A DNA stretch of 64,000 nt from Takakia lepidozioides (GCA_030704615.1 CM060733.1:47058001-47122000); one strand, 5' to 3'. Positions 3,787 through 62,120 are shown, numbered from the stretch's first letter. Numbers and translations are program-made. Notes: generated from the sequence alone by a model not told the origin.

Positions 3787-4286
3787 NNNNNNNNNNNNNN
3801 NNNNNNNNNNNNNNNNNNNNNNNNNNNNNNNNNNNNNNNNNNNNNNNNNNNNNNNNNNNNNNNNNNNNNNNNNNNNNNNNNNNNNNNNNNNNNNNNNNNN
3901 NNNNNNNNNNNNNNNNNNNNNNNNNNNNNNNNNNNNNNNNNNNNNNNNNNNNNNNNNNNNNNNNNNNNNNNNNNNNNNNNNNNNNNNNNNNNNNNNNNNN
4001 NNNNNNNNNNNNNNNNNNNNNNNNNNNNNNNNNNNNNNNNNNNNNNNNNNNNNNNNNNNNNNNNNNNNNNNNNNNNNNNNNNNNNNNNNNNNNNNNNNNN
4101 NNNNNNNNNNNNNNNNNNNNNNNNNNNNNNNNNNNNNNNNNNNNNNNNNNNNNNNNNNNNNNNNNNNNNNNNNNNNNNNNNNNNNNNNNNNNNNNNNNNN
4201 NNNNNNNNNNNNNNNNNNNNNNNNNNNNNNNNNNNNNNNNNNNNNNNNNNNNNNNNNNNNNNNNNNNNNNNNNNNNNNNNNNNNNN
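3787..4286. other. Assembly gap (500 N)
   Basis: N run. Confidence 1.
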
Positions 4287-4705
4287 CCTCGTGTAACCCC
4301 ATCATCCCTGTAACCCTCAGCACGTCAGCCCTGTGTAACCCTCATTGTGTAACTCTCACATTGTAACCCCACCATGTAACCTTGATACTGTGTCAATCCC
4401 CTCCGTGTAACCCCCAATCGTGTCACTCCTAGCTTGTGTCACCCCATCGTTTATCCCCAACGCATGTCACCCCTGTTTGTGTAGCCCCTTGGTGCCCGGC
4501 AAAAATTGGCGGGCTCCGAGAGGTGTCAGATATTTTGAATTCAAACCTGGGTTACACGATTCGGTGACATCAAAACCCACGTATAACTCCATCATCGCGC
4601 GTCATTTTCACCAGGTGCGCAGACGTCGTGCGGTCCCGAGGGCTCCGCTGCTTTGCCCGCGTGTGTTCTGCGATTTGTACTATACTGGTGGTACTGTTGG
4701 CGGTA

Positions 4706-7450
4706 ATGGCGTGTGCTGCAGCGAAGGTGCTAGACGAGGAACGCAAAGCAGCATTGGAATCAAATGGTTTGAAAGACGAGGCGGGAGAACTCTGTCATTT
4801 GCAGCATTTGGTATCTCATTTGAAATGCATCCTACAACTGCCCATAGACGGGCTTTTCAATCACACAAACCTCCGTTGGATATGCCAGGTTTTCCAGGGA
4901 AAAGAGAAACGGATATCCATCGAAGTAGTTGTCGTTCCATGGTCTCACATTCCTGATTTTCTGGAGGGAGAAACGAGTAGAGTGGATGGGAAGACCCAAT
5001 TTTATGTTCAAGATCGAAGGTACCATGAGTTGCCAGATCTGACGACACCGCGTGCAAACAGTTATTGTCAGTGGCATAAGTAAGTCACTTACGAGGGTTG
5101 TATAACATTCCCAGCCCCACTTCTTTCTGCTGGCCTAGCAAAGTCGTATATGGCGATAACCCTCCTCGTTTTGTATGCTTTCTTTGTAGGCACCACTGCT
5201 GCTACGGCATCCTGCGATGCAACATTTGGGACCAACGAAAATAAGGTATTCGTGTCACGCTTTACCTTTCATTGCATTCTGAAATGTGAGTGTCATGCAA
5301 CTATTTCCAATATTACAACACTCACCTTATTCATTTTTGTACCATTGCGACATTGCAGTTCCCAATGTATACCATGATGGTGTTCGACGAATGACTCAAC
5401 GACATACTTGTTGCTTATATTATATCAGTGAGAAATAAAACGACTGACCTGAGCCCCTGGATGAAACGTCTTCGCGACCGACTTCTTCAGAGCAAACCAG
5501 ATTGGAGGCCAAATGCTTTTGTTGTCGACGATGCAGACGCAGAAATCAATGTTATCAGGTACACGGCTAGAAGTTACAATGTTCTGAGTCACACAGTAAT
5601 TTACACTACAATTTGCATGCATGAGGGGTTTCATGGATCGGGCTACACTGCTGCTAGTTACACTGAGAATCACAGTAAGAGTTAAACTGCCAATTACACG
5701 AGGGGGTGCATTGCTGCTTGTAACACTTGGAGTTACACTGTAAGTTAATCGAGGGGTTACATGGATTGGGTTGCAGTGTTGTCTGTTATACTGAGGGTTA
5801 TACTATCAGTTAGACAGATGGTTACACTGCCTTGAGTTGGACGGAGAGTTACACTGCTGTGGGTTAGACCGAGGGTTACACTGCTATGAGGTAGACAGAG
5901 GGTTACACTGCGAGTTACACGGCGTGTCATCTGCAATTTTGCATGGATTAGGTTGCACTGCTATAGCCTGTGAGTTACACTGGGAGCATCACAGAGGGTT
6001 ATATGGGTTGGGTCGCTCTGAGAGTTACACGGTGTAACATGGATTGCGTTACAGCGTTGCGAGGGGTTATATGCGTTGGGTTACACTGCTGTGAGTTTCA
6101 CTGATAGTTACATGGCCAGATGCACGAGGGATTACATGAGTCACACTACTAAGAGTCGCACTACTAAGAATCACACTTCGAAGAGTCACACTGCGAAGAG
6201 TTACACTGCTAAGAGTTACACTGACAAGAGTTACACTGCTAAGAGTTACACTGCAAGGAGTTACACTGATGGATTGGGTGGCATTTGATGTGTGTGCGTG
6301 CAGGGAATCGTTTGGGGATGTAGCGATATTTCTATGCCTTTGGCATGTTCGCCGCGCTTGGCTGAAACATTCGTGGCGTAAGATGCCCGATCCATACACT
6401 CGCAATGTTGCTTTAAAACAGCTTGGCGACGTAATGTACGGCATTAACGCCTGTGTGGGAGTCACCCCAGAAGAGTGGGCGCTGGAGCGATTGGAAGATT
6501 TGCATTATTCCTATCCGCTTGCGTGTGACTTCCTACATTACATCAGAATGGAATGGGTCCCAAAACTGAGCATGTGGATCACGGGGGCTCGAAATATTCC
6601 CCATGCAAGTCAGGATACTAATGCCGCAATTGAATCTTGGCACAGAAATTTGAAGGCTCGTTTACGCTCGGGAAAGCAAAGGCTTGATGGCAGGAGAATT
6701 GATTGGCTGATCAGCGAACTCGTGGGTCCTGTTCTAACCCACTATTGGTATAGAGACAACTTGAAATCGAAAGGCTTCAAAATGAATGTACGACAGGAGG
6801 AATTTATCAGCAATGTTGTTTGGACTGCGAGGGAGATCCCTGACGTCAATGTTCATTTGCCCACTATTCCTGGTCATCCGGCGATTGTGGATAGTGTTCA
6901 AACGGCTGGTCAAAGCTACACAATCTATGCACCTGCAACCACCTAGGCTTGTTGCGATTGTCCATGGGCTTTGAAGGGTAACTTTAGCAAACATCAAATC
7001 TGCATTCTTCAATTAATGAAGCCAAATCTGAAGGAAGGGCTTATTGTGAAGCTCTGTGGCACAAAGCTCGGGACCATTCATGGAGGTCTTGACATGTTGA
7101 TGAAATCGGAACTTCCAGATATTGATGCAGAGGAGGAAGTTGTGAATCTAGCAGAGCCTACGGAGTGCTCAGCATCATCCCAGCGTGGTCGGCAGGAGCC
7201 GTCGGATGTTTCATCAATTGAATCTGAGATGAAGTCCCTGTCGCTTCTTGGCAATGAGAGTGAAACAATGCGCAAACATCTGCTTGCCGAGCTTCGTTGT
7301 GTTCGTGGAAGGTTGTCCACTTTACAAGTCAGAATCGACAAAGGTCTGTTGCACCCTCTTCAGGCAGTTCCATTTATAAAAAATGATGATGGAAACAACA
7401 TGTCCCTTACCAGGAAAATGGATTTTGTAGACCGGTTCCATAGTAAGTGA
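4706..7450 (+). pseudogene. MULE-family DDE transposase with C-terminal SWIM finger; exons ~4706-5079, 5190-5245, 5359-5558, 6304-7450
   Basis: Motifs DATFGTN, FVVDDADAE, CLWHVRRAW, QDTNAAIESWH, GRRIDWL and SWIM CDC...(C>S)KH, with canonical GT-AG introns. Inactivated by stops at 5392 (TGA) and 6944 (TAG) and a frameshifting internal deletion near 5208. Confidence 0.88.
5600..6270 (+). repeat. G(G/A)GTTACAC motif array in transposase intron 3
   Basis: Dozens of gggttacac/gagttacac copies, including a tandem AAGAGTTACACTGCT run at ~6140-6270. Confidence 0.9.
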
Positions 7451-7559
7451 CCATTGAGTCCATTGGCAGTGACACTTATTTTGTGATCGCCAGGTTTAAT
7501 ATGAAGTACATGTCTATTCATGGGTTGTTATTCACTTTGCCATTCCATCCACATTCAAC

Positions 7560-8860
7560 CTATGTAACCCACTCAATGGGACACCCACGGGCCGGGGTGA
7601 CACAACGGAGGGTTACACCATCTGGGGTTTCATAACGTAACATAGCTCTACTTAGTGTAACTCGCATCTGTGGTACTCCACACAGTGTAACACAGACGAG
7701 TGTAACCCTCTTCAGTGTAACTCATTGTGGTGTAACTCCAAGTGTAAACTGCAATGTAACTATCAACAGTGTAACCCAGTATATAACCCCATAGAATATT
7801 GCTGTCAGTGAGTGGTGTAACTCTAAGAATTATAAGTTGATGACTACAGTGTGACTACAGGGTCTGGGTTAGTCTGTCGGGGTTACATGACCCTTCAATA
7901 CAGAGTGGGAAGACGTTGAAGTCGAGCACCTTTAGTCGCCAACACTAGCCCCTGCATGTGTAACCCCTCTATGTGCAACCCCTCTATGTGTAACCCACCG
8001 TGCATGTGTAACCCCTCTATGTGTAACCTAATTTGTGTGTAACCCACCCTGTATATGTAACCCATGGACGTGTAATCCATGAGATAGATAATCATTCCGT
8101 TCAACCTATGTTATGGACCAGTGTAGCCCTCCGGAGTGTAACTTGTTGTTGTGTAACCCCAAGAAGTATGTATCCCGACCACATGTGACCCCCACTGTTG
8201 TCACCCCATCGCATGTAACCCATTGTACAATTTGGGGTGCATGCTGTAAACCCCGATGCTACATCGCCCCATCTTATGTATCCCCACAACACGTAGCCCT
8301 TGTATAGGCAACCCTGCCCACTGTCACTGTGCACAGTGTAACTCAGAACTGTGTAACCCTCGAGTGAGTGTAACCCAGAGTGTTGTAACTCCAAGAAGTA
8401 TGTAACCCGACCAGATGTTACCCCCACTATTGTGACCCCATCGTATGTAACCATAGCCCTCATGTATGTAACCCCATGTAGTATAACTCTGAGAACTTCA
8501 GTGCACAAAAACTTCAATGCGAAAAATAAATAAATAAATAAATAAAAATGGGGTTACATGCCACGAAACTCTAGTGTTTCAGCTACGTGACCCTGACATA
8601 GCCAAGAAGGCCCAACCATGTAACCCTGAGAGGCCCATTGCATGTAACCCATAAGTGTAACCCCACGTTGTGAGACCCGGCACGGTGTAACCCATCACTT
8701 ATGTGTGAACCCACAGAGTGTAAGCTTATTGCCCCAGGGCCCCAAGGTGTACCCAAGTACTTGTCTATGACTCCACTTCATGTAATCCAATAAGGTGTAT
8801 CCCTATGTAAGCCCATTGCATGAAACCCAAACTGTGAAGTGTTACGAACAAACCACATAG
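7560..8860 (-). repeat. TGTAACCC motif array between the convergent genes
   Basis: Dense tgtaaccc/tgtaactc copies with local duplications (e.g. 8150-8220 vs 8385-8450). Confidence 0.9.
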
Positions 8861-10399
8861 AAGCAAAAAATGCATCAAGAGACGCTATTTATTTCTTTGG
8901 CCATTTGACCAAGTCTTTGTCCATCTCGTCACACAACCAACTAATCATATGAGTACGGGAAGCTATCATGGTTGACTCGTCGAACCAACTTGCAGTAAAA
9001 ACCCGCCTATGACGGGTTCGATCTTCTGTGGTTTTCACATTGAACTTCCACTCCAAGTAAAATTGCACAAAACAAAGTGCATAATAGCCGCACTCCCAAC
9101 AGCTCCATTGCTGGGGACACTGGCCTCAAACCATTCCATCCTCTCCATGACGTAACTGAAGTCATCAGATCCAGGCATGCAATCAAAGAACGTTATAGCA
9201 AAATTTCGCAAAATTCCTTCAATGAGTTTGGGTCGGGCAATGGTTTTATGGGAGTCCAAATGTACTATCCGACCTCGACGCTCTAAAACAGCAACACTCC
9301 AGTGATCACTGCAACACAAACAAAGCCGTAACGCCAGAATAGAAAAAAAACTCTCCAATGAAACCCATTGTGGTGTAACCCGGCAGTGGTGTAACCCAGT
9401 AGTGTAACCCTTTGTACTGTAACTCTAAACGGTGTAACACAACTAGTCAGCAGTGCAAATCCAAACTAGTGCAACTCAGTGTAGAACAGAGGAGTGTAAC
9501 CCAACATGATCAGTCAACGCTCAAATTACTTACTCGAAGACAATAGGGATGACAACCACGTCCACAAGATCTCGATTCTTTGTGAACACCATCCCTCGGG
9601 CATCCTGAGTGTACCATTCTTGCACCAACCCGAATAGCGTCTGCAGATCGTTACCATTGGTACGCATGACATGCCACTGGAAAGGAGCACAGATGACAAA
9701 CTCAGGTGCGATAGCCTTAAACAAGTTGGCCTCCAGAAGTTTGTTGTAACCCGAGAGCAATGCATCTGTGACAGTTGCTCTTATTTTATACATCGGCTCA
9801 AAATCTGTCTCTTCCAAGTAAAACTGTAACGGGGTAGAAGTCAGGAAGGCATCGCCATAATAAAAACTTCACTATGGGCGCCCTAGGAGGGTCCGACACC
9901 ATTCTGAACTTCGTCAACTACCGTTGTTTTAGTCTGCACAACAAACCGCATATTACGAACATTACAATGCATCATACAAGAGTTATAATCAATATTCACA
10001 ATCAAAGAGGATCAAAGTACAATGAGGTACCTCGAACAATCCCGCAAGTGCTTGGCAAAGACCTCTTGCTGCTGGACAACGTCAACCTCGGAGACCCCTG
10101 CACTTTTGCCTTTCAATTTGGTTCGCTGTTTTTTGGGTGCGACAAGAACAGGTACTCCTTTGTTAGCGCTAGGGGGTTCAGCCAACCGCTTTCTTTGAGC
10201 AGGCGGCCGTTTTGACCTCCTGGGATTCTCTGCAACCCTGACAATGCCGCCGGTAGGGAGAATTTCTGGGCTAGAGGTGACAATGCCGCCGGTAGGGGGA
10301 ATTTCTGGGCCAGAGGTGCCTTGTTCTGAGTTTGCTGCAAGTGCTGAAGACTGCACTCCCTCGTCTGAGATGTGTTGGGGAGATGACTGACCAAGGGCA

Positions 10400-11420
10400 G
10401 AAGTGTCACAGCTCACCTCCTCGGTGCTGCCCCTGTCAATGTCACCCTTCTGTCCAGACCCCTTATCAGAGTCACGCTTCTCGGTGTCACCCTTCTCTTC
10501 GGGTACCTCCTCAGTGTCACACTTCTCAGTGTCACCCTTCTCTTCGGCTATCTCCTCAGTGTCACTCTTCTCAATGTCACCCTTCTCTTCGGCTACCTTC
10601 TCAGTGCCATTGTTCTCGGTGTCACTCTTCTCTTTGGCTGCTTTATCAGAGTCACTCTTCGCAGTGTCACCCTTCTCATCGGGTTCCTTCCCACTGTCAC
10701 CCTGCTGAGTAACAATCTTATGTGTGTCACTCTTCTCAGTGTCACGATGTTCCGCAACATCCTTCTCCTCGTGACTCTCCATAGTGAAACGCTTCTCAGT
10801 GTGACCCTGCTCTGTGTCACCCTTCCAACTGACAACCTCCTCGGTGACACCCTTCCCCATGTCACCCATGTCGATGTCACTCTTCTTTGCATCAACCTCC
10901 TCAATGCCATCCTTGACTGTGTCGTCCTTCTCTGCACTGTCACCCTCCAAGACCATGTTGACGAGCGGAAGAGCGTCATCCGACGCGACTAGTGGCCGTG
11001 GCAAAGGAGTGTCACCCTCCACGACTAATGGTAGTGGAGTGTCATCCATGGCAGGGTTACACTCACGGACATCTGCCATGTGGGTTGGCTGTGGGGTGTC
11101 ACCCCTACCAGTGTAACCCATATCAATGTCACTCTCAACGGAAGTTGCAGTGTTCACGGGCAATGGTGTGTCACCCACGACAATGTCCCTCACGGCAGTG
11201 TCAGCCACACCGGTATCCACAGTGTCACCCTGAGGTGCAGTGTAACCCTCCTTCCCTGTTGCTCCTCTCTGCGCAGTGTCACCCTCAGGTGCAGTGTAAC
11301 CCTCAGTTTCAGGGCCTCCTCCCCTTGCAATGTCACCCTCCGCATCAATGTGACCCACAAAGGCTCGCTGACTGTCTGTCTGCTCAATCCCCCGGACAAT
11401 GTCACCCTCATTACTGACCA
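10400..11420 (-). repeat. Coding repeat (K/E)GDT, KSDT, EGYT = in-frame GGGTGACAC/GGGTTACAC
   Basis: ORF 10012-11583 translation; the + strand shows tgtcaccc/tgtcactc every ~15-30 bp. Confidence 0.85.
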
Positions 11421-12099
11421 CCTCTTCCAATGTGACATGTTGTGGCGCGAAATGACTTGGATCTTCGGTTTGCATCATTTGAACAGTGTCATTCTGAGAG
11501 AGGTTGACCACATGATCCTCACAAATACTTACATTGTTGCATGGAGGGTTCAACACAGCATCTCCAGATTCAAAGTCATACACAGACTCTGGGTCAAGCT
11601 GGTCCCCGGTTCTTCGATTAAGACCTCCAAAAGAAATGACTGGGCTGCGGACAAAGAGGTTCGCACTTGGGTGTTCCTCCTTGATGTATCATCTTCAATA
11701 TCAGTATCAGAATTCACGGGCAAATCCCGCGTCAAGTCTGCTAGGTTCACCCCTAAGTGCAGTTGGGTTGAGTACAATTCACCAATCTGCGACAAAGATA
11801 CAACGGCAGATTGACTTGGAATGATGTCCTCGTCATGTACATCGTCGCTTTGCGGGGCGGAAATTGAATGAAGACGAGGTTTAACCATCTCCTTATCCTG
11901 TAACACAGAGGGTCCATCACTCGTCTGCGCGCCCCCTGTATCGCATTGTGGAGGGGCCCCATACACAACTTCGTGAAGCTCACGTTGAGCCTCAAAAAGG
12001 TTTTTGAACGCATTGGCGACTTGATTGGTCATGAGCTCGGACTCATTTGCATCGGGGGAAAGACAAAGGTTTTTAGTCGTGGAACGAGGTTTTTGAAAG

Positions 12100-12460
12100 T
12101 GCAAGGGTTACACTATGTAAGAGTTACACTAACTAGGACAAGACAGTGGTTCGGATTACACGATGAGGGTTACAACACCCTATTAGAGACAGTAGTTTGC
12201 AATGGGTTACACTACCTGGGTTACGCTAGTGAGATTACACAACGAGAGGGTAACAAATCTAGGGTAACACAACGAGGGGTAACATTAGGGGTACACTGAT
12301 TACAGGGTTACATACTCCGAGGGTTACACTGATTACAGGGTTACACACAGCGAGGATTACACTGAGTACAGGGTTCCACATAGCGAAGGTTACACTAATT
12401 ACAGGATTACACACAAATGGGTTACACGACGAGAGGGGTGACAGTGGATGGAGTAACACT
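12100..12460 (+). repeat. GGGTTACAC array in accessory-gene intron
   Basis: Tandem GATTACAGGGTTACA-like units; similar arrays in introns 9370-9505 and 13360-13560. Confidence 0.85.
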
Positions 12461-15400
12461 TACAGAGATACCAAGGCACTACAGACCCAAGGTCTCTCAT
12501 ATACTGGATGCCCAAACGCGCATTGAAGTCCACTTCTGTTGGTGATTCGCTGAAGAGGCCACAACACCAAAGCTGGATAAACGATTCTTTCTGATGGATC
12601 GCAAAGTGATGGGCGGCGCAACGACCGCTTGCCTTGCAAAACTGTATAGCTCCGTTGATCTTAACTAACCTGTCACCCCACTCTTCTGTACTCAAACTCG
12701 ATATTGAGTCCTCGAGCTCAGAATCCAAGGTCGCAATTCCGTCACCAGGTTGTGCAAAGTACATCAGACTAAAGCCGTAATACTCATCGACCATGTCCTT
12801 CACCTTTGAGGCCGTAAGAGTACTTTCCAGAAGGTCAGTCGTGAACCCCAACCTGGGATGCGTTTGGGAAACTGACCTGCCATGATTTCTTACATCGTTG
12901 TGGGCCAGAATTCTCAAAAGGAGTGTTGGCGGTCCAATGTGCGGTTTGGTGAGATTCTCCATTTGACTGATCAATCCTTCCGCAAAATCGTGAGTGAATT
13001 CCAACGGATCTGGAACAACCAAACCTTCGATTCCATCTACAGTAATAAGTGATGACAAGAGGATTTGAAGTTCTGGCATCGTCAAGGTCGGTATTGCCAA
13101 CAACTGGTTTGTCCATCGTGTCATCATCATGTGAGGCTTGGCTCTCTCGATGGACATGCGTAAGTCTCCCACCTTTTTTCTTTTTCTGCTTTGGCATGTC
13201 AGGATGCCCAATGCTCTCCAAATACTCCTTCACCCGATTCAATTCCTCTATCATTAACGGACCATGATCCGGCTGGGCTGTAAACGCCTTGTGGGCAGCA
13301 ACAACACTGTCCATATCATCGCTTCTAAGATGATGTCGAGCTCCCTGCGCAATACAGTGTGAGGGGTTACACCAGAGAAAAGGGTTACAGCACGAGGGTT
13401 ACACATGAAAAATGGGTTATAAGGAAGGTGGGCTACACGGGGTTACACAGAGGTGGGTTACATGCCATAGGGATTTTTAAAAGGGGTCCTCTGTAGATGG
13501 GTTACACTCTGGGTTACACGCCACATGAGAGACATAGGGGGTAAAACAAAGGGTTACACGGATAGACAATAGCCCAAAATTTGAAAAACAGAGAAATGGC
13601 AGGGAATCTAACTTGATTGTCCGTCGATAGAACCCAACTTGATTTTGCAGCTGTCGCATGGACTGCGCCCTCGCCTCGCGCAACAAATTCTTGGAATGCC
13701 GGCCAAAACCCCTTGTCATTGACATCGGAAATGGGAACTGAGGAATAAGGCCATGCGGTAGCAAAAGGATTGAGCCTGGAGTTCGCTTTCGCAAGATGAA
13801 CCTTGAGCTCCGGTTTCCCCGATTTCCAAAGTTGATTTTCTTTGCAATAGGGACAGGTAGAGGCGGGCTCAATCGCCGCTTGTCTCTCTCGTTAGGAACT
13901 TGCCGAACAGAAGGACCAGGGACAGAAACAGCAGGAGCACGAAAAGATGGAACCTCTGTAGCAGAAGTAGCCGAAGAAGGTACAACAACATGCACTTCAA
14001 TAGGATCTGCAATCTCACCCAAAGCCACCCTATTTTTCAGAATCCATGCATGATATGCATCAACAGCAGAAGCTGGAACAAAATTCACCACATTTTCAAC
14101 AGCCATGGCATGCTTGAGCTCCGCATCAGGAAACGGTTTTGTTTCTTTCGGTCTGGCGATACATGCGGCCGTTCCATCGAGTTCTTATCTACCTTTACTT
14201 CCCCACAGTAAGGACATTTGAGACTTAGGCCGGCCCTTTGCTCCCTCCACCTTGGCCTCTCTACACCTGGTGTGGCAGTATGTGATCATTGTAGCATGCT
14301 CATGCTCAGTGTACCAGAAGCGAACTCGTTAGCCATCCCTCTTCAAGTGATCAAATGGAATAGTAGCCTCTCCAGGGAACAGATAACAATCAGCCATGTC
14401 AAAAGAAAAAGCTGACAGAAGAGAAGAGAAGAGCAAGATCAAGACAAGACCAAGAGAATTCCAAAGAACGCACAGCAGGGAGCACGCACATCAAGGAGTG
14501 CATGAAGAATAGGAAAGGGCTGCGAGAAGGGAAAAACTGAACAATGATCAAAGAACGAAGAACGAAGCTAGCTAGATGTCACCCATAAGGCACGTCGGTT
14601 AAGCAAAAGACGGCGGTTCATTAAAATCTGGCGGCTTGCAATCAACTATATCCGCACTCACTCACACGTGTATGAGTTGCAATCCCGGTGTCACCCGGAA
14701 TAGCGGAGTGTAACCCGTAACCCTACACTTGTGAGCGCAACAAACCAGCCGTTACCCGTATGCGAGACACGTCGAGTGTAACCCTCCGTCATGTACCCAC
14801 ATATGATGTAACCCTTCGTCACAACCTCATGTACCCCTAGTGACTCCCGAACACAACATCGATGTAACCCTGTCATATCAAACCATTAGTATGCAACCTC
14901 TAGATAAAAATGGTCGGTCAACGTAACGCCCCACCCATGTAACCCTAGCCTATGTGGCTCCGTGAGCGCAACATCCAGGTAACCCATCAAACATGTCAAC
15001 CCCATCTAAACCTCCATTACTAAACCGTCTACCAAACCACCATGTATTGAGAAAGAAAACACCGTATAACCCCCTGTGTGTAACCATAGCACACGTGACG
15101 CAGTCATATAAACCATCAGACATGTAACCGGTTGACAGTGCTTGCAGAACACGCAAGATTCGATACGTATTGCATCCAGAATAGCGATGAGTAAGCTGCC
15201 CCGGCTGGTGTGTGAACAAAAGATACACGAGAGGAGAGTGAATGGGCACCCCGTCAAATGAGCAGTTGCTTGCATGGCTAGACCGAAAGAAACAAAACCC
15301 TTTCCTAATGCGGATCTCAGGAATACCATAGCCATCGGGGACGGTGACAAAACAACAAGAATGACATTGAGAAAGAAAAAGGATAGAGACAACCGTATCA

Positions 15401-15689
15401 ATCGTACAGAAAACCGTAATAATAGATTTGCCGGATCGCTGCGAGGAAAGCGTTGTCTTGTATGTTGCTAGGAAGACGATACTGAACTGAATGAACTACA
15501 AATCTTTCGCATTGATGTGTGAAGCCGATTGGGCGCCACGGGAATTGCAGAAAGCTGATGCCCCAAAGCAAAAAAAATGAGCGAGCTAGGAATCTGCAAA
15601 ACGGATGGAGAGAGCAAATTAGGGTTTCGGCCTCCATTTCAACCTCCATTCGGCCGTTGGATAGTTTACACGTGTATGATGTACACGAG

Positions 15690-16740
15690 GCGGAGTTACA
15701 GAGGGTTACATGGAGTGAGGGTTACATAGGGGTGAGGGTGACACTCTGCGGTGTTACAGAGGGTTACATGGTGATGAGGGTTACACCTAATGAGGGTTAT
15801 AGAGGGTCACAGAGGGTTACATGGATCGAGGGTTACATGGGGGTGAGGGTGACACTTTGCGGTGTTATAGAGGGTTACATGGGTTACAAAGGGTTACATG
15901 GTGGTGAGGGTTACAGAGGGTTACATGGAGTGAGGGTTACATAGGGGTGAGGGTGACACTCTACGGTGTTACAGAGGGATACACGGGTTACGGAGGGTTA
16001 CATGGTGGTGAGGGTTACATCTGGTGAGGGTTATAGAGGGTTACATGGAGTGAGGGTTACATAGGGGTGAGGGTGACACTCTGCGGTGTTATAGAGGGAT
16101 ACATGGGTTATAGAGGGTGACATGGTGGTGACGGTTACACCTGGTGAGGGTTACAGAGGGTCACAGAGGGTTATATGGAGTGAGGGTTACATGGGGGTGA
16201 GGGTGACACTGTGCGGTGTTACAGAGGGTTACATGGTGATGAGGGTTACACCTGGTGAGGGTTATAGAGGGTTACATGGTGGTGAGGGTTACAGAGGGTC
16301 ACAGAGGGTTACATGGGGGTGAGGGTGACACTCTGCGGTGTTACAGAGGGTTACATGGTGGTGAGGGTTACAGAGGGTTACATGGAGTGAGGGTTACATA
16401 GGGGTGAGGGTGACACTCTGCGGTGTTACAGAGGGTTACATGGTGGTGAGGGTTACAGGGGGTTACAGGGGGTTACAGGTGAGGGTTACATATTGAGGGT
16501 TACAGGGGGTTACAGGTGAGGGTTACATATTGAGGGTTACAGAGGGTCATGGGGTTACATGGATTAAGAGGGTCACAGAGGATTACATGGGTTGCAAAGT
16601 TTTATAGAGGGTTACATGGAGTGATGGTTACATAGGGGTGGGGGTGACACTCTGCGGTGTTACAGAGGGTTACACCTGGTGAGGGTTACATGTGTTGCAT
16701 AGGGTTGCAGAGGGTTACATGGGTTTACATGGTGGTTAGT
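15690..16740 (+). repeat. Right subterminal GAGGGTTACA satellite with a ~85-130 bp higher-order unit
   Basis: The block GGGTGACACTCTGCGGTGTTACA recurs about 8 times, embedded in GAGGGTTACA(T/G) monomers. Confidence 0.92.
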
Positions 16741-17741
16741 GGTTATTGGCGGACTGGTGTCGCAGAACAACGATGCAGGCGGCGACGACGCCGATGGGAT
16801 GAGAGCGGGGTTGGGGAGGGATTGACCGAGCCCAGCCGGTTGCCTTTCGATGGCTGCCGGAGACGGAGAACCGGTGGTACGGGGTGTCAGGGCTGGACCG
16901 TCCTGACGCGCTCGCATTAAGTTCTTACATTATTCCTATTATCTTCCTTATATATATATATATAGTGAAACTGTGGTAGTCGTGAAAACCCTAGTGTGTT
17001 GTAGTGTTTGTAATGTGGATGTTTAGAAACAAAAATGCTTAGAGTTGTTTGAGTAGGATCATAGCAGAATAATCTCAACATCCGAATGTTGAGATCACCA
17101 CACTTAGAACTATACCTGGCATACGAATCATTGAACTAAGGAGCAGTTAAGTAGGGTTTGTAGCAGAAGCCAGTCAAGACTCTGAGAATTATCAAGCTAT
17201 TCTCACTAAGGAAAACACCCTATCTATGTAAATGATACCCAAGTTCACTAAGCCATGAAGCCTTGCTTTGCTTTGCAAGGAAGGGTTGTGCACAACCAAT
17301 CCACCATGATTCCATTCGCAACAAGCCATGTCTATCGATTATGAATGGCATGAGCACTTAGAGTATTCCAATGCCTCCTATCTAGAATCTCTATCAAGAT
17401 TGGCTAAGGCATAGGTGCATAAATCCGTTCAACAAATACTCTACGAAAAACCAAAAGTATAATATCCAAAAAAACATTGATAAGAGAATTTTGTTCCTAA
17501 AATTTCCATCATCACACTAGGCATTTCATTTTATTTATTGTAATCACACAGATATATAAATTTTCCTACATTCAATCTCTTAGAAGCATAACGGCTTATT
17601 AAAAGTGGGTTAATTTTTCCATTCCTCCATAAAGATCTGAATTCAAACATAAGATGTCCACACAACTGCACAATCAGTCTTGATATGCATGTATACATTT
17701 AGATCCACAAAGTCTTGATGTAGTAGCAACTGCATTTATGA

Positions 17742-21399: not shown

Positions 21400-22390
21400 A
21401 CACGACCGCCAATTATGGCGGTCGCTTTGTTTTTCGAAATTAAAAAAAAAAACGACCGCCGTATTGGCGGTCGCTTCAATTTAAGAAAAAAAAAACCAAG
21501 ATTGGTGGTCGCATTGGTGGTCGCTTTATTTTTCGAAATTAAAAAAGAAATAGTGACCGTCATATTGGCGATCGCTTCAATTCATTTTTAAACAAAAGCA
21601 AGATTGGCGGTCGCCTAATTTAAAAAAGAAAACAAGCGACTGCCGTATTGGCGGTCGCACAATTTTGCAAATATATACAGAACAAGCGACCGCCATATGG
21701 CGGTCGGATAACTTCGGAAAAAAAAAAAAAAAAAAAACAAGCGACCGCCATTTTGGCGGTCGTTTAATTTCAAAAATATATAGAAAAACAAACGACTGCC
21801 ATATGGCGGTCGGTAAATTTAAAATTATACAAAAAAACAAGCAACAGATGAAAATAAGACCGCCACATCGGTGGTCGCTTAATTTAAAATTATACAATAT
21901 TTGCGACCACCAAACCAGCGGTCGTTTTAATGTAATAATATATAAAATAAAAGCGACCGCCAGCCTGGAGATCTCTTAAACTTGAAAATATTAAGATTAA
22001 AAGCGACCGTCTTACTGGCGGTCGCGTTTTTTTAAAATATTAAGAATAAAAATGGCGGTCGTTTTTTTTAAAAAAAATATTAAGAATAAAAGCGACCATC
22101 ATATTGGCGGTCGCTTTATTTAAAAAATATAAACAAATAAAACGACCGCCATATCGGCAGTCACATTATATTTTGAAATAAAAATTAATAGCGACCGTCA
22201 TACGGGCGGTCGCTTAAATTTAAAAATATACAAAATAGAAGTGACTGCAATATTGCACAAAATGAAAGGAAATAAAAACGACCGCAATAGTGGCGGTCGC
22301 TTATTTTTCATAAAAAATAAAAATAGCGACCGCAGTATTAGTGGTCGCTTAATTTCAAAATTATAGTTGTACCGCCATTTTCGGGTGGGC
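21400..22390. repeat. Periodic palindrome array AAGCGACCGCC-N4-5-GGCGGTCGCTT with A-rich spacers
   Basis: About 20 units at ~45-55 bp spacing, counted by eye. Confidence 0.88.
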
Positions 22391-23834: not shown

Positions 23835-24334
23835 NNNNNNNNNNNNNNNNNNNNNNNNNNNNNNNNNNNNNNNNNNNNNNNNNNNNNNNNNNNNNNNNNN
23901 NNNNNNNNNNNNNNNNNNNNNNNNNNNNNNNNNNNNNNNNNNNNNNNNNNNNNNNNNNNNNNNNNNNNNNNNNNNNNNNNNNNNNNNNNNNNNNNNNNNN
24001 NNNNNNNNNNNNNNNNNNNNNNNNNNNNNNNNNNNNNNNNNNNNNNNNNNNNNNNNNNNNNNNNNNNNNNNNNNNNNNNNNNNNNNNNNNNNNNNNNNNN
24101 NNNNNNNNNNNNNNNNNNNNNNNNNNNNNNNNNNNNNNNNNNNNNNNNNNNNNNNNNNNNNNNNNNNNNNNNNNNNNNNNNNNNNNNNNNNNNNNNNNNN
24201 NNNNNNNNNNNNNNNNNNNNNNNNNNNNNNNNNNNNNNNNNNNNNNNNNNNNNNNNNNNNNNNNNNNNNNNNNNNNNNNNNNNNNNNNNNNNNNNNNNNN
24301 NNNNNNNNNNNNNNNNNNNNNNNNNNNNNNNNNN
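23835..24334. other. Assembly gap (500 N)
   Basis: N run. Confidence 1.
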
Positions 24335-45944: not shown

Positions 45945-46340
45945 TGTTAGGGGACTGCTTGGGAGTTTAACGCTTTTACAGGTTCTGTGGGGTACCCTTA
46001 ATTTTTACACAGACTGAGATCAATATTAGGGATGACAGCAGCAGGCTTTAGGGGGGGTTTACACAGCTCGTCACAGCCGCCACAGCCAACACAGCCCAAT
46101 ACAGCCCGACACAGCCGACACAACCAGTCACAGCCCGACACAGCCGTTACAGCCCGTCACAGTCGGTCACAGTCCGTCACAGTCCGTCACAGCCAATCAC
46201 AGCCAGTCACAGCCCGTCATAGCTTCAACAAGCCCAACGCAGTTTTGCACAGTTGTCACAGTACAGGGGACGGTTTAACATGGACAGGAACGACTGTGTG
46301 GGGAACGACATCTGCAGAGGGAAATATGTTACTTCAGGGG
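45945..46340 (+). mobile_element. 5' part of an LTR related to 62121-63051
   Basis: Begins TGTTAGGGGACTG, with GGGTACCCTTAATTTTT.CACAGACTGAGA and a CACAGCC array; truncated by the element starting at 46368. Confidence 0.8.
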
Positions 46341-49425: not shown

Positions 49426-52400
49426 TGTCGCGCGGCTTTTACTCACCCATCCCTTCGCTATTCGAGGCGGAAACTCCAAGATTGAAGAGTTGGAAATCTC
49501 TAAGTACTCAGCCCGCGCAGAACAATCAGTCATGACCTACAGCTAGTGTATCATGGGGGTGTTTCCTATTTGTTTCCCTTTTGGTATTCATGTTAACTAT
49601 CTTACCATTGATAATTAAATATCAGTTTGAGTTTATTAATCTATTGGATTCCATCCATTCATTCCACAGCTTCACTCAGATCTCTCTACACAGTGTGTTG
49701 GTATCGTAAAAGTATCCGATTATGATTTATAGGTATCAGGCCGAAGCCAATGTGTCTCTAATCTCCTCTACAATATCATTACAATCTTGCATATATCAAG
49801 CATCTACTCATTTCTCTATCTTCACTTCGTTTTCATCTCTGCCCGATCCCTCTCCTCTATCACAAGAAGTCTCCTCCGAATGTGTGAAATCCCCTTCCTT
49901 CATTCCCAGTTTCCTCCCTTTTATCTTCCTATCCGCGGTTCTAACCGTTTCCCTCACTAACCGTCGTCTGTGAACTAACATGTTCCCTTCAAGGTGTTGT
50001 TCCCCACAGTCGTCCCGGCCTACTCTTCGTTCCCTATGATCGTGACAGCTGTGTCAAGCTGTGTCAAGCTGTGTGGCCTGGCTGTGTGAAAACTGTGACG
50101 GGCTGTGACTGACTGTGCGACTGTGTTTGGCTGTGTTGGCTGTGTAAGGCTGTACGACTGTGAGGGCTGCGTTGATTGTTGTCGGCTGTTGTGACGACTG
50201 TGAGGCTGGCTGTGTTGGCTGTGTCTGCTGTGACGACTGTGCGGGCTGGGTTGGCTGTGGCGTCGGCTGTGACGACTGTGACGGGCTGCTTTGTGCTGTG
50301 ATGCTGTGACGACGGGCGGACGGTGCGTGTCTTGCTGTGACTGTGTTGTGCGACGAGTGATGTGTGACGCCCGACTGTGTGTAACCCCCCTCTACAGTGC
50401 GCTGCTGTCAACCCTAAGGCTCCTGTTGGTCTCAGTCTGTGCAAAAATTAGGGGTACCCTACAGATCCCGTATAAGTGTCTAAGTCCCCGACAGTCCTCT
50501 AACATTACCCCTTCCCCCCTCAAAAAGCCGTGTCCTCACGGTTTACTGATTTCTACTAGCAAACCTTTGTGAGTGAGCTCCTTCTTGACGTTGAGAGTTT
50601 CGTGGCGGACTGTGTGTACGAGCCCGAGGTCTGTTTCTGTTGGACGGAGATGGTTGATCACTACCTGGATAAGTGAGCCCTCTGGAGGCTGATATCGAGG
50701 TAATCTTCCGGCATAGGAGATCCCCGTCGCTTCTTCTCTTCCATCTGAATTGCATTAGTCTTCTCCCATGTCAAAAGAATTCGGTGTGAAGAAGAAAAGT
50801 TGTATCAGATCTCATCGCCTCTCAGGTGTTTTAATTTTCGAACTTTTTGTGTAATCATCTGGGGCATACAATGTTGTCCTACCACATGTCTGGAAGTTTG
50901 TATTTTACAAACATGGTGTGAACCGCTGAACAGCAAAATTGGTGTAGACATGAGCTCCTTGTCTGTCCAGGTGAGTGGGGTAGGTTACCCAATTACTGGT
51001 GCAGCGTGCAAGTACTTCCATGCCACATGTCCCTTATAAAAATGTCATCAATGCCGAATTTCTGTGTTGACAAATGGTTGCAGGCTGCTTGAAACCATGA
51101 GCGAATTTGAGAATCCTTTTGCCATCATAAACTTTTGGGTCATATAGGTACATAGAGGTGGCACTGAAGGTTAATACCCAATGATCTCCACTGGAATAAC
51201 TTTGAAAGCGTGTTTGCATCTTTTGTTGCTCAATGTGGTAACGTACCAGAAAACGCGCAGCGTAGTATAACCCGCACCCCATGACAATACTGCTATCTCC
51301 TTGGTCTTGGTATAAATGAGTCCATGTACAACCTGGAAAGCAATCAATTCCCTCAAATGGTACCTGCCTCGTGCCAGTATTGTGCAAGTGATGATCTTCA
51401 ATAGTCGATTGTTCGGAAGAACTTTAGTCCTAGTTGCCACTGGCATCCAAATACGCATGATTGGTGTAGTAATGTGCGAATGACTGCGGGAGGACTAAAT
51501 TCTTCCAAGCCAAACCAACATGATGGGAATTTGGTTGAAGGGACATAATCAATAGCCCTACTGTACTCCCTTGCAGTGGAGTTTTAGGTGGGTTAAAAGC
51601 GGCATTGCCCCATACCTCCGGCTGTGGTGGCTGTGGTGTGCTTGTAGTAACCACAGGTTCAGCTACTGGTACAGTGACTTGTTGTGGTGGTGGTGGTACT
51701 GGCTCTTGTATCATTGGCATCACCTGCACCTCCTGTGAAGACTGAAAAGCCAAAGTTCTGGCTTGTAAATAAGAAGCCATTAGCTGTTCCTGAGGGATAT
51801 AGACTCTTTGGTCGATGTTGAAGTGAGTTCTTCGACTTGAGTCTGGAGTCGTCTACATCCTCTTGTAACTCTGCTATCCTACTATAGACATTGTCTATAG
51901 TAGTTGTGGCAATGTTCTGCACCTGCAGCTGCCTGAGCTCATTCATCTCGCTTTGCGGGTGAGCTTCCGTGGTGCGCTGGGCCTCTACTGGCCCTTGTGC
52001 TAACAGACCTGCATAAGGCTGTTATCCACCAAGTTGCTTGTGGTTCCCCTGAGAGTTTGCTCCTCTCTCAGTGTATAATTCCAACTGCTGGTTGTAAGCC
52101 TCCATGCGCTTTGCCTGAGGTTCAACCAATTGTGCATAAGCAGCAAGTAGATTTGGCTTCCTTCCAAGCCTTGTTATTGACCGCGATTTCATTTCTATTC
52201 GCCATGATGGTTTGTTGCAACTCCACGATGTGCTTCTCTTGATTAGCTTCAATCTGCCTGTATTGCTTGAAAGTATTTTCATTGCGACAGATTGTATTCT
52301 TCATATCGACAATGAAGCTTCATTTGCTCAACATTCTCTTCTTCTGCCTTCGTACATTTTTACGCTTGACTGTTTATTCTTTTGTAGATTGGTCAAGCAT

Positions 52401-55021: not shown

Positions 55022-55521
55022 NNNNNNNNNNNNNNNNNNNNNNNNNNNNNNNNNNNNNNNNNNNNNNNNNNNNNNNNNNNNNNNNNNNNNNNNNNNNNNN
55101 NNNNNNNNNNNNNNNNNNNNNNNNNNNNNNNNNNNNNNNNNNNNNNNNNNNNNNNNNNNNNNNNNNNNNNNNNNNNNNNNNNNNNNNNNNNNNNNNNNNN
55201 NNNNNNNNNNNNNNNNNNNNNNNNNNNNNNNNNNNNNNNNNNNNNNNNNNNNNNNNNNNNNNNNNNNNNNNNNNNNNNNNNNNNNNNNNNNNNNNNNNNN
55301 NNNNNNNNNNNNNNNNNNNNNNNNNNNNNNNNNNNNNNNNNNNNNNNNNNNNNNNNNNNNNNNNNNNNNNNNNNNNNNNNNNNNNNNNNNNNNNNNNNNN
55401 NNNNNNNNNNNNNNNNNNNNNNNNNNNNNNNNNNNNNNNNNNNNNNNNNNNNNNNNNNNNNNNNNNNNNNNNNNNNNNNNNNNNNNNNNNNNNNNNNNNN
55501 NNNNNNNNNNNNNNNNNNNNN
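55022..55521. other. Assembly gap (500 N)
   Basis: N run. Confidence 1.
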
Positions 55522-57480
55522 AAGCAGTATTAGAACACTGTGGCAGGCCATGAGTGTACTCATTCATGGATGGCTTCAGTGGTTATAATCAGTGCAAGTG
55601 GCAGAAAAGGACCAAGGAAAACAGCTTTCATCACAGACTGGGGGGCTTATGGCATACAAAGTCATGCCCTTTGGCCTTTGTATGCACCAGCGACCTTCAG
55701 AGAGTGATAAGTGAATCTTTTCATGAGATCTGGATGATTTCATGCAGGTTTTTTGGATGATTTCAGTGTGTAAACAGCTCTAAGAAGGAGCACTTGCATA
55801 ATTGGAGTTATGCCTGGCCAGATGCGATGATAGGTCTGGGATTTAATCCAGAGAAGTGTACTTCTGTGTGAACTCAGGGTGCTCTTGGACCATTGTGTGT
55901 AAGAAGGGACTTCTTTGTGGATCCCAGGAAGACAGAGTCCATTAAAGTCTCTCCACCACCAGTGAATGTTAAGAGTTTCAAGGAGATTCCTTGGGCAAAC
56001 CAGTTTATTACAGAAGATTTGTCAAAAGGTATGCACAATACAGCACCATTGAGAATCTTCTAAGAAAGAAAGTGCAGTGTTTGCCTGGACGCTGAATGTC
56101 AACAGGCGTTTGAGGAACTTACACTATCATTTGTCACGACTAACAACAGGAGAGGCCGCCACAGGAGTGGACGATCAGTTACCTGATGCGAGTTTATTTG
56201 TAATGGAGGTGCAAGGAAGTGCAGATGAATGGTTAGATTGGCAGTGGCCAATCAGATACTACCTTGCTCATGGTCAGTGCCCACCTAGTTATGGTAAGGA
56301 GCAGAGGAAGAGAATTGCTATCAGAGCTTTACCTTATACTATGGTAGGAAGCAGAACGTATAAGTTAGGACCTGATGGAGTACTAAACGATGCTTGTACC
56401 ACCATGAAGTAAATAAGTCTTGGAGGAAGTTCATAAAGGAGTGGCTGGAGGTCATTTTGGAGAAGAGACTACCAGTAGAAAGATACTACTCGCAGGATAC
56501 TGGTGGCCTACTTTGTTCAAAGATGTACATGAGTATTGTCAGAAGTGTGATGAATGTCAGAGGCTAGGACCTTGCAGAGATCTGGAAGAATGGCCTTGCA
56601 TCCTACAATGCCTACGGAACCATTTCAGAAATGGGGACTAGACTTTGTTGGACCAATTAATCCACCATCAAGAATACACGAACAGGTACATAATTACAGC
56701 CACTGATTATACTACAAAGTGGGTGGAAGCTAAGCTTTGAGGGACAACACAGCCAAGTCCACACAAGGTTCCTGTACGAGAACATACTTACACGATTTGG
56801 GGATGTCCTTAAATTTATCAGTGATCAAGGAAGTCACTTCATGAATGAGACCATTGAGTTGTTGACTAAAGAGTTTATGATTGTGCATAGAAAGAGTACA
56901 ACATATTACCCACAGGGTAATGGGCAGGCAGAGGCTACCAACAAAATACTATGTACTATCTTGGCTAAGATAGTCAATGCAAACAGAACGGATTGGGATA
57001 CAAAGCTGCTGACAGCTTTGTGGTCATACAGGACTTCATATAAAGTCACAACTAAGTATACACCATTCCAATTAGTTTATGGTATGGAAGCCTTACTTCC
57101 AGTGGAATTCCTGTTACTACCATGAGAACAGGGAGTGGGGAAAAGAATGGAATTGCAAGACTCCATCAAGGTCAGGAAACATGAATTATACCATGTGGAA
57201 GAAGTACGTGCTGATGCAGCTGATAATATGACCAGAATTCCAGATGAAGCGAAAAGAACAGTTTGATGAAGGCAAGTAAAAGACTTTTAAGACGGGGGAT
57301 TTGGTTCTATGGTTGCAGAAGAAAGGAAAGATTCAAGCTTCTAAGCTCAAATCACCGTGGAAAGGACCTTATGTCATACAAAAGATGTATGATAACAACA
57401 CCGCCATGTACAAACCATTAACAAAGAAATGCTGGAAGAGTGAATGCAAATAAGTTGAAGGGGTACAGTGGTATCCATGA
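55522..57480 (+). pseudogene. pol: pol: RT and integrase, RNase H largely deleted
   Basis: YSFMDGFSGYNQ, MPFGL, FLDDF, H..GGHFG..KIL.AGYWWPTL..C..CQR, TDY.TKWVEA, SDQGSHF, YYPQGNGQAE, WKGPY. QQAFEEL joins directly to HLSRL near 56120. Confidence 0.92.
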
Positions 57481-57589
57481 CAAACCCCTGCAGCATGATT
57501 TGCATGTTGAACCACAAGAGCAGTCACGGCTGCACCAGTGTTACGAACGGAGTATGGACACTAGTTGCTAGGCCCAGCATATACGACCA

Positions 57590-57870
57590 GGGTGGGCAAA
57601 AAAACGTAACACAGCCATATCACAGCCCGCCAAGGCGCACACAGCTTATCACAGCCCATCACGACGTGACACAGCCAACCACAGCCCTCACGACGTGACA
57701 CAGGACACACCTATCACAAGCCAATCACGACGCAACACAGCCTATACACAAACACAGCGTGTCACAAACCCAACAACACGCCTATCACAGCAGCTTACCA
57801 CAGTGCATCACACCTATCACAGGGTAACACAGTATGACACAGCCCTGTCACAGCTCAACACAGGCCTACT
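57590..57870 (+). repeat. CACAGCC-like motif array between pol and the extra ORF
   Basis: Repeated acacagcc/tcacagcc; the same motif is arrayed in the LTRs (62245-62440, 50040-50380, 46060-46260). Confidence 0.75.
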
Positions 57871-58335
57871 AAAATTACACGACCATAGAATCAGTGACAA
57901 GTGGACACATAAAAACTTCAGGAAAATGGATGACGGAAGAGGAAATGGAAATTACTTTAAAATAGACACGTGGAGGTCAGGATGCGACACACACAGCAGA
58001 ATGAAGTGCCGGACAGGTGTCAAAAGAAAGAGGAAAAGAACGGCCGTCAAATGGGATGAAAGGCGGGGCCCATTAATGAATACGGAAAAAGAGAAAACAA
58101 ACGAACGGCAAGTACAGAAAAGCTGAATTCATGTCGCATGTGTGATCTAGTGGACTATCCAACAGGAAAGTCCACTAAAGAAGATAAAAGTTAAAATCCA
58201 GTCACAGCAAATACAGCCAATAGAAAACCAGAGAAATGATCAAGAAAATGGAAGAAAATTGAACGCAAGAGGCGGCATCGTTCTGAGTAACGGCGTCTCG
58301 ACAGGACAGACCATAAATGCTATAACTTGGAAACT

Positions 58336-61300: not shown

Positions 61301-62089
61301 TTCCAGGTTGTACATGGACTCATTTATACCAAGACCAAGGAGATAGCAAGTATTTGTCATGGGGTGCGGGCTATACTACGCTGCTTGTTTTCTGGTACGT
61401 TACCACATTGAGCAACAAAGATGCAAACACGCTTTCAAAGTTACTCCAGTGGAGATCATTGGTATTACCTTCGGTGCACCTCATATGTACCTATATGACC
61501 CAAAAGTTATGATGCAGAAGGATTCTCAAATTCGTTGATGGTTTCAAGCAGCCTGCACCAATTGTCAACACAGAAATTCGGACTTGATGACATTTTCTAT
61601 AAGGGACATGTGGCATGGAAGTACTTGCACGCTGCACCAGTAATTGGTACCCCACTCATCTGGACAGACAAGGAACTCAGTGCCTACACAATTTTGCTGT
61701 TCAGAGGTTACAACAACAAGTTGTAAAATACAAACTTCCAGACATGGTAGGACAGCATTGTATGCCCCAGATGATTCCACAAAAAGTTCGAAATTAAAAC
61801 ACCTGAGAGGCGATGAGGATTCTGATACAACTGTTTCTTCACACAATCTTTTGACATGGGAGAAGACTATGCAATTCAGATGGAAGAGAAGAAACAAAGG
61901 GGATCTCCTATGCCGGAAAATTACCTCGATATCAGCCTCCAGAAGGCCTCACTTATCCAGGTAGTGATCAACCATCTCCATCAACCAGAGACAGACCTCG
62001 GGCTCGTACACACAGCCCACCACGAAACTCTCAACGTCAACAAGGTGCTCACTCACAAAGGTTTGCTACTCGGAAACAGTAAACCGTGA
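58336..62089 (+). pseudogene. Retrotransposon extra ORF: plant-transposon-domain-like N-terminus, long coiled coil, Pro-rich linker, globular C-terminus
   Basis: FCRTFEPRTGTTTVKGVELM.TP.YLQQLF.LP and WADIMYNALVEEM...GPIIAQII resemble env-like/extra ORFs of Athila/Tat-type elements. Gln/Glu-rich heptads at 59950-60800. Conserved in the inverted copy; many indels. Confidence 0.65.
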
Positions 62090-62120
62090 GGACACGGCTT
62101 TTTGAGGGGGGAAGGGGTAA

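Follow-up and report, generated by a model that had tools for sequence, protein, structure and literature searches.

In the CACTA transposon En/Spm, subterminal 12-bp repeats are bound by the element-encoded protein TnpA. Among plants, a single lineage is known to have transposon proteins that counteract silencing in a sequence-specific manner. In Arabidopsis, VANC21 binds the motif YAGTATTAY, which stands in dense one-orientation arrays in the non-coding parts of VANDAL21; the target arrays of VANC proteins are fast-changing tandem repeats, and the VANC proteins themselves have variable tandem-peptide-repeat regions (Hosaka 2017, PMC5735166). Some VANDALs have VANC genes with a captured Ulp1 domain, the capture being dated to the monocot-eudicot split (PMC13317346), and VANC was reported to be dicot-specific and to resemble MAIN in structure, a kinship visible by structure only (PMC13547354); the VANC family is characterised by DUF1985 and a fold like that of MAIN/PMD (PDB 9LNK). 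In addition, the AtMu1c transposase alone binds inverted ends, lowers methylation and activates cognate copies (preprint 10.64898/2026.08.24.746577). Here, we analyse a stretch of 64,000 nucleotides from the moss Takakia lepidozioides (GCA_030704615.1 CM060733.1:47058001-47122000, one strand; the whole stretch is called the window), which holds, judged from its sequence, a defective copy of a multicopy moss family of Mutator-like transposons (Mutator-like elements, MULEs).

The layout of the copy, from left to right, is an end lost in a gap, a subterminal motif array, the transposase gene (+ strand), a spacer, a convergent accessory gene (− strand), a motif block, a 1-kb subterminal array and a GC-rich terminus. 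Such a motif-saturated non-coding layout was previously known only from the self-protecting transposons of Arabidopsis, and our literature search found no paper on such elements in bryophytes. We establish the statistics of the motif, the anatomy of its arrays, the Mutator identity of the element, the Ulp1-like residues of the accessory gene, the decay of the window copy and the presence of a second copy elsewhere. What is new concerns the decay and deletion of the window copy, the second copy in public reads, the assignment of the family to a moss clade of Mutator-like elements that have inverted ends and a 9-bp duplication, and the gathering of a motif in a relative with no detected Ulp1. 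On what the arrays do, we lean towards the view that they would be binding sites for a protein encoded by the element, as discussed below.

It is noted that VANDAL21 (Hiun)/VANC21 and VANDAL6/VANC6 of Arabidopsis (PMC5735166, PMC10398659) resemble the Takakia element in being of Mutator type with a transposase and one or more accessory genes, in having an 8-9-base motif that stands in tandem in introns, spacers and upstream regions, in many cases with a single orientation per block, while being scarce in exons, and in having an accessory protein with variable tandem peptide repeats. The Takakia element differs from them in that no similarity to VANC, DUF1985 or PMD was found, in that its host is a moss while VANC is dicot-specific (PMC13547354), in that its relatives have long inverted ends while VANDALs have none or short ones, in the higher density of the motif (about 100 exact copies), in that the motif also codes for part of the accessory protein, and in being known here from sequence alone. 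The preliminary description of this DNA had proposed an analogue of the VANDAL/VANC system in a distant plant lineage; the likeness in layout stands, including tandem arrays with compartment-specific units and a shared core, while no VANC, DUF1985 or PMD signal was obtained. Because the kinship of VANC and MAIN is structural only, such negatives in sequence searches leave room for a very remote relation to VANC.

The background that the preliminary description had given on VANC genes with captured Ulp1 is correct (PMC13317346). KAONASHI/KIU and the Ulp1-carrying elements of melon, rice and grapevine (PMC13317346) are like the Takakia element in having a Ulp1-type domain at the C-terminal end of the accessory protein in a Mutator-like element, and acting on their own non-coding motifs is a feature of the KIU elements. 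The differences are that in the Takakia protein the N-terminal partner of the domain is unrelated, with no VANC part found, that the host is a moss, and that the relatives have long inverted ends, while KIU elements lack terminal inverted repeats (non-TIR) and live in flowering plants. Since the KIU capture is dated to the monocot-eudicot split, the moss case would be a separate capture or a much older one. En/Spm is similar in having many copies of a short motif in both subterminal regions, inverted; it differs in belonging to another superfamily and in having its repeats limited to the subterminal regions, with none in introns and spacers. An element of the moss Ceratodon purpureus has a homologous transposase, a convergent accessory layout and a motif of its own, mostly upstream, in introns and in the spacer; it differs in that no Ulp1 was found there, in having two other accessory genes, and in a far lower motif density. 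Finally, AtMu1c acting on the ends of AtMu1 and BRODYAGA2 (10.64898/2026.08.24.746577) is a model for the transposase as reader of a motif, with the difference that its binding is confined to inverted ends while the sites here also fill introns and the spacer.

Distribution and anatomy of the motif arrays

The motif GGGTTACA occurs 103 times in the window, both strands taken together, and 101 of the 103 copies lie inside 4292-16719; by dinucleotide-preserving shuffles, 1.84 copies are expected on average and 7 at maximum. The exact copies in the element are distributed very unevenly (binomial p = 5e-22): the non-coding DNA, 6,520 bp in all, has 96 of them, and the exons, which add up to 6,142 bp, have 5. 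None of these 5 is in the transposase exons and one, at 9745, is in the Ulp1-like exons. In the remaining 47 kb of the window only 2 copies are present, which is the chance level, and the relatives of the element bear other motifs; within the window, the motif is specific to the element. The arrays and the borders of the element are the following.

3787-4286, no strand: assembly gap of 500 N, which conceals the left terminus and the outer portion of the left array
4287-4556, no strand: left subterminal motif array, 5' of the transposase start, predominantly TGTAACCC when read on the + strand, inverted with respect to the right array
5562-6303, + strand: transposase intron 3, with arrays of 27-, 45- and 15-bp units and 19 sites on the + and 2 on the − strand
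7451-8888, no strand: 3'-3' spacer of the convergent genes, with 38 motif-like sites (32 on the − strand) and 15-17- and 33-bp units
9309-9535, − strand: accessory intron bearing the motif, which splits the Ulp1-like region
12105-12463, − strand: accessory intron with an array of 33-bp units, 11 sites, all on the + strand
13345-13600, − strand: accessory intron bearing the motif 8 times, always on the + strand
14700-15130, no strand: motif block 5' of the accessory gene, 11 sites, − strand
15600-16740, no strand: right subterminal array of 59 motif-like sites, without exception on the + strand, built of 17-bp subunits that are grouped into higher-order units of about 120 bp
16741-16948, no strand: motif-free stretch, 60% GC and CpG-rich, probably the right terminal inverted repeat by analogy with the inverted ends of the relatives

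Every compartment named by the preliminary description has a density of 1.5-5.1 motif-like sites per 100 bp. Its statement that the motif fills the non-coding parts and is nearly absent from the exons is therefore right for all of these compartments, with the 47 kb elsewhere at chance level, but needs amendment for the coding part: the large accessory exon is filled, in frame, by GGGTGACA, a variant that differs in one base, with 21 relaxed and 4 exact sites in 10031-11690, and the absence from exons is true of the conserved exons only. The repeat periods in this exon, as given by Tandem Repeats Finder, are 15, 39, 45 and 54 bp, all multiples of three.

With the array units determined in each compartment by Tandem Repeats Finder, and with the sites and their flanks aligned compartment by compartment, only the core RGGGTTACAY (9-10 bases) is found to be common to the arrays of nine compartments, the flanks and unit lengths being different. 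That arrays of different units and flanks keep one core argues for a pressure on the core rather than for the spread of one satellite. The orientation of the motif is constant inside a block and switches between blocks, and the left and right subterminal arrays are mutually inverted, which is as expected for end-binding sites. We also considered that the intron arrays might have come from the nested insertion of short derivatives of the family. This was rejected, as each intron array is of a single orientation; since no intron has a paired inverted array, the internal arrays are not accounted for by nested insertions. We likewise rejected an informative CpG pattern of the arrays, as their CpG is just slightly below that of the exons.

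These data bear on the possibility that the arrays have no function, a slippage-prone unit having spread through DNA free of coding constraint as a result of replication slippage, gene conversion and unequal exchange. All the arrays are tandem, the number of repeats varies between copies of the family, and the motif is present even in an exon that tolerates it, all of which would be expected from this explanation. Moreover, a metagenome scan for three closely spaced copies of the motif gave more than 120 contigs, none of them related in DNA or protein, and the occurrence of triplets of GGGTTACA in so many unrelated contigs implies that the word itself is not special. By contrast, independent slippage seeds would not keep one core through nine compartments with different units and flanks, and the 101 exact copies persist in a copy that is old enough to have many gene-disabling mutations. 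We thus consider an absence of function to be rather improbable.

Still another explanation is that a protein of the host, such as a Myb-type binder of telomere-like repeats, reads the motif, the element borrowing host transcription or chromatin states. The core includes GGGTTA, which is near to telomere-type repeats, but the motif is not the plant telomere unit, the chance-level occurrence in the other 47 kb of the window is not what a host site would lead one to expect, and the use of another motif by the Ceratodon relative fits family-specific readers better. This explanation seems to us very unlikely.

Identity of the element, its relatives and a second copy

Position 4287, which the preliminary description had taken as the start of the element, is the border of the 500-N gap at 3787-4286. 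The left terminus and a part of the left array are thus unassembled, and no inverted-repeat partner for the right end was found in the window, the left partner falling in the gap. That the element is Mutator-like, as had also been stated, is borne out by the MULE and SWIM matches of the relatives of its transposase and by the inverted ends and 9-bp target duplication in Ceratodon. Long inverted ends are present in the relatives, namely 265 bp at 100% identity with a 9-bp duplication in the Ceratodon sequence (labelled L003) and 250-370 bp in three further ones (L004, L005 and L001). Taken together, the MULE and SWIM matches, the inverted ends and duplication of L003 and the inverted ends of L004, L005 and L001 place the family among Mutator-like elements with inverted ends.

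The Ceratodon purpureus element (CM026444.1:3429611-3439649, or L003:6904-16942) is complete and intact, with a length of 10,039 bp. It is bounded by perfect inverted repeats of 265 bp and the 9-bp duplication CAGGTGTGT, and as the inverted ends are 100% identical and the duplication is preserved, it must have been inserted very recently; it may be an active element. Its transposase is 36-45% identical to that of the window, with the same exon order. Its motif, CTGKCCTAA, is present in 18 copies in 10 kb, as against a maximum of 7-8 in resampled sequence, and the sites are found along the inner margins of the inverted ends, 5' of the transposase, in its introns and, as a 15-bp tandem, in the spacer. 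The moss clade offers a graded series, from no build-up of a motif through the 18 copies in Ceratodon to about 100 here, which allows a comparative test.

The accessory genes of the relatives are of another kind. In the Ceratodon and metagenome elements there are two other convergent genes, conserved between these elements, one with a classical C2H2 finger and the other of unknown function. No counterpart of the accessory pieces of the window was found in the sequences L001-L008, comparisons of profiles with the accessory proteins of the relatives included, and none of these proteins matches Ulp1. Since the Ceratodon relative gathers a motif of its own without a detected Ulp1, Ulp1 looks dispensable for the build-up. 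As read from these elements, the build-up differs between members of the clade, the words are specific to the family, and Ulp1 does not appear to be required. Note also that the transposase is the only protein common to the window family and its relatives, which shifts weight to the transposase as reader of the motif, or else to a non-homologous accessory reader in each family.

A second copy of the Takakia family is present on contig L002 of the sequencing run SRR15431198. Its protein, P0007, is 95% identical to that of the window, the identity in DNA to window positions 5857-7468 being 93.3%, and its last transposase exon and SWIM finger are intact. The array in intron 3 is that of the window with changed repeat numbers. 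Of the differences that separate the two copies, 76% are transitions, and C-to-T-type changes are in excess on the side of the window, 15 of them at CpG. This excess would be the signature expected of a methylated, silenced copy.

In addition, it is noted that the same 8.7-kb Mutator-like element, with an identical 367-residue protein, is present in four metagenome samples (L005-L008; JGI Ga0558085_0010827, Ga0558092_0005652 and others). The finding of this element there indicates plant DNA, probably of a moss, in these metagenomes.

The transposase gene

Exon models were built from open frames, GT-AG splice sites and homology, and the protein searches were run exon by exon, on single exons or pieces. 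The gene is the following.

4706-7450, + strand: transposase pseudogene, exons at about 4706-5080, 5190-5247, 5359-5561 and 6304-7450

Exon 4 (6305-6943) matches six proteins at 42-47% identity, and a profile search gives 54 proteins; the profile matches comprise annotated proteins of Ceratodon purpureus together with many contigs from metagenomes and sequencing runs. The single exons of the window gave no match in Pfam, and the assignment to the MULE domain comes through a relative, P0018, which matches PF10551 (MULE) over residues 3-76 in a truncated match of E = 6.6e-5 and 23.7 bits, below the cut-off of 27.6. Window exon 3 aligns with residues 8-60 of P0018 at E = 2e-11, overlapping the PF10551 part of that protein. 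The signature D...D...CxxH...E is readable in the window transposase. For the SWIM domain (PF04434), matches above the cut-off are given by P0001, P0002, P0004 and P0053 and a match at the cut-off by L003, while the same-family protein P0007 scores 18.9 bits versus the cut-off of 19.6.

The decay of the gene is evident from two in-frame stops, at 5392-5394 and 6944-6946, where the relatives have Trp at both places; both are G-to-A changes of Trp codons. The SWIM finger of the window is broken by a stop, and its third Cys is changed to Ser. Moreover, the distance from exon 1 to the first catalytic Asp is 0.36 kb in the window versus 1.1-1.9 kb in Ceratodon, L005 and L001, with about 1.1 kb absent. 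The Ceratodon transposase has a Cys/His-rich segment that is a candidate for the usual DNA-binding region of Mutator transposases, a reading made by eye only, and Pfam does not recognise the segment.

Under another explanation, the motif may be the transposase's own site. The arrays at the ends would then assemble the transposition complex, the internal arrays would be a secondary spread that may let the transposase activate the element, an action reported for AtMu1c, and the accessory gene would be captured cargo without relation to the motif. The two end arrays are indeed inverted and the densest ones, the transposase is the only protein that the Ceratodon relative has in common with this family, the trait being present there in weaker form and with another motif, a Mutator transposase was shown to bind and hypomethylate its own ends, and the capture of Ulp1 is recurrent in plant Mutator-like elements. 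On the other side, about 40% of the sites are far from the ends, in the introns and spacer, where they are not needed for transposition alone, and no DNA-binding domain is recognisable in the transposase, the relevant part being absent in the window copy. We regard this explanation as a serious possibility, held tentatively.

The accessory gene and its Ulp1-like domain

The accessory gene has the following parts.

8889-14336, − strand: accessory pseudogene, with its ATG at 14336-14334 and its stop at 8891-8889
13780-14220, − strand: two CPYC...H modules, with Cys codons at 14216/14207 and 13855/13846, candidate zinc fingers by eye only
12464-13344, − strand: exon for the orphan N-terminal domain, with no detectable relative and no confident fold
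10031-11690, − strand: large exon for an acidic low-complexity linker, whose repeats at 10400-11420 consist of the motif variant, translated in frame as Gly-Asp-Thr or Gly-Tyr-Thr
8892-9829, − strand: Ulp1-like (C48) protease region, split by the motif-bearing intron (9309-9535) and by one frameshift

The product has, in order, two Cys-Pro-Tyr-Cys...His modules, the orphan region, the acidic linker of about 340 residues and the Ulp1-like domain. The reading frame is broken near 9120-9131, at 11553-11688, at about 13040 and at about 13880; the first 150 nt contain additional breaks.

A Ulp1 domain in this gene had been proposed, and the proposal has moderate support. The catalytic motifs occur in the right order on the − strand, namely DHW (His 9304-9302), LDS (Asp 9256-9254), PQQ (9113-9108) and ECG (Cys 9092-9090). 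When searched against the Protein Data Bank (PDB), the His/Asp exon has as its sole match the Ulp1-like SUMO protease 6dg4, with HW...LDS aligned, but E = 0.67; the neighbouring Ulp1 exon X gives chance matches of comparable strength to SmpB, so that E near 0.5 is the noise level in this search. In the Atlas feature search, 27 of 30 named hits (clusters) are Peptidase_C48, at 0.91, which is to be taken as a lead only. The single Ulp1 exons have no Pfam match (PF02902 being unmatched), the homologue search with the His/Asp exon against proteins was blank, and the Ulp1 C-terminal piece and the second Cys-x2-Cys piece gave noise or nothing against the PDB. Taking the ordered His, Asp, Gln and Cys, the 6dg4 alignment and the Atlas result together, we conclude with moderate confidence that the accessory gene would end in a Ulp1-like protease domain.

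The N-terminal part has given no relative. The search of Pfam with 20 stop-to-stop pieces, at E up to 10, found nothing but a match of low complexity to Extensin, in the repeat exon, and for the N-terminal part no DUF1985, DUF287 or PMD. A 194-residue N-terminal piece had 0 hits in 1.84 billion representative proteins, gave only noise and no VANC-like chain when compared by sequence with the PDB (a second N-terminal piece likewise gave none), and scored below the recognition level in the Atlas; its AlphaFold model has a pLDDT of 35.

It is also observed that an inverted partial duplicate of the accessory 5' exon lies at 15268-15332 (+ strand), 83% identical to 14102-14166; the two are head-to-head with the motif block 14700-15130 between them.

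The preliminary description had favoured the accessory protein as reader: it would read GGGTTACA by its N-terminal part, and its Ulp1 domain would remove SUMO from chromatin factors and so lift silencing, making the protein a functional analogue of VANC/KIU. Consistent with this explanation, a long N-terminus that is specific to the family and has two Cys-x2-Cys...His modules is joined to the Ulp1-like domain, the arrays stand upstream of and inside both genes, as in VANDAL21, the protein has variable tandem peptide repeats, as have the VANC proteins, and VANDAL VANC genes with captured Ulp1 act on their own motif (PMC13317346). However, no homology to VANC, DUF1985 or PMD was found, the N-terminal domain is an orphan and has no confidently predicted fold, the zinc fingers were read by eye only, the Ceratodon relative gathers a motif with no Ulp1 domain or accessory homologue found there, and the gene is broken in the window copy. 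We consider this explanation unlikely, and the role in de-SUMOylation would be pure conjecture.

Possible role of the arrays

We now return to the arrays as binding sites for an element-encoded protein. In this proposal, the RGGGTTACAY arrays would be multimerised putative sites for a sequence-specific protein that intact members of the family encode, and they would have grown by tandem duplication wherever the sequence was free to vary, the growth extending even into the disordered coding linker, there in multiples of three bases. The arrays would let the family protein find all copies, for transposition, and they would probably also serve the activation or de-silencing of the copies. It is noted that we infer both the nature of the arrays as binding sites and the outcome of the binding. 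As to which protein is the reader, the transposase is a possible candidate, though a tentative one, and the accessory protein is a doubtful one, the rest of our expectation going to neither of them or to no reader at all; in our assessment from the sequence comparisons, the transposase would be at least as likely the reader as the accessory protein.

Several points weigh against the proposal. Tandem arrays can arise by slippage without function, and the switching of polarity between the blocks follows no clear rule. In the relatives, the build-up of a motif is marginal in L005 and there is nothing in L001, which means that it is not general in the clade. The part of the transposase that is absent here includes, in Ceratodon, the Cys/His-rich candidate DNA-binding segment, and the window copy is, to judge by its disabled genes, dead and can make neither the transposase nor the accessory protein, a point that the preliminary description had not mentioned. 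The value of the window copy is hence as a record of the layout of the family, not as a working element.

A more far-reaching version can also be formulated, in which mosses would have evolved a self-protection system of their own in Mutator transposons, independent of the dicot VANC. A fusion of zinc fingers, an orphan domain and Ulp1, with a linker coded by the motif, would read the RGGGTTACAY arrays and lift the silencing of cognate copies, and sister families would have other motifs with other readers. We think this version quite improbable. The occurrence in a bryophyte family of the cis-layout of the VANDALs, together with an unrelated Ulp1-bearing accessory protein, would in itself point to convergent evolution of self-recognition in transposons, and the family would provide a second system for the co-evolution of a transposon protein and its DNA target.

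Other repeats in the window

Outside the element, blocks rich in ACACAGCC and CACAGCCC (26 and 18 copies, respectively) are repeated at 46002-46340, 50067-50447, 57572-58123 and 62010-62410. They share a translated start and occur in both direct and inverted orientation; the open frame at 56694-57122 is integrase-like. These blocks look like long terminal repeats (LTRs) of retrotransposons with short-motif arrays of their own. The ACACAGCC set was considered as a sister Mutator element, which was rejected, as it belongs to the LTR-retrotransposon-like repeats. Further gaps of 500 N in the assembly are at 23835-24334 and 55022-55521 of the window. Finally, we note a dense array of CGACCGCC at 21403-22292, where 18 copies on alternating strands occur in 0.9 kb of A-rich, low-GC sequence.

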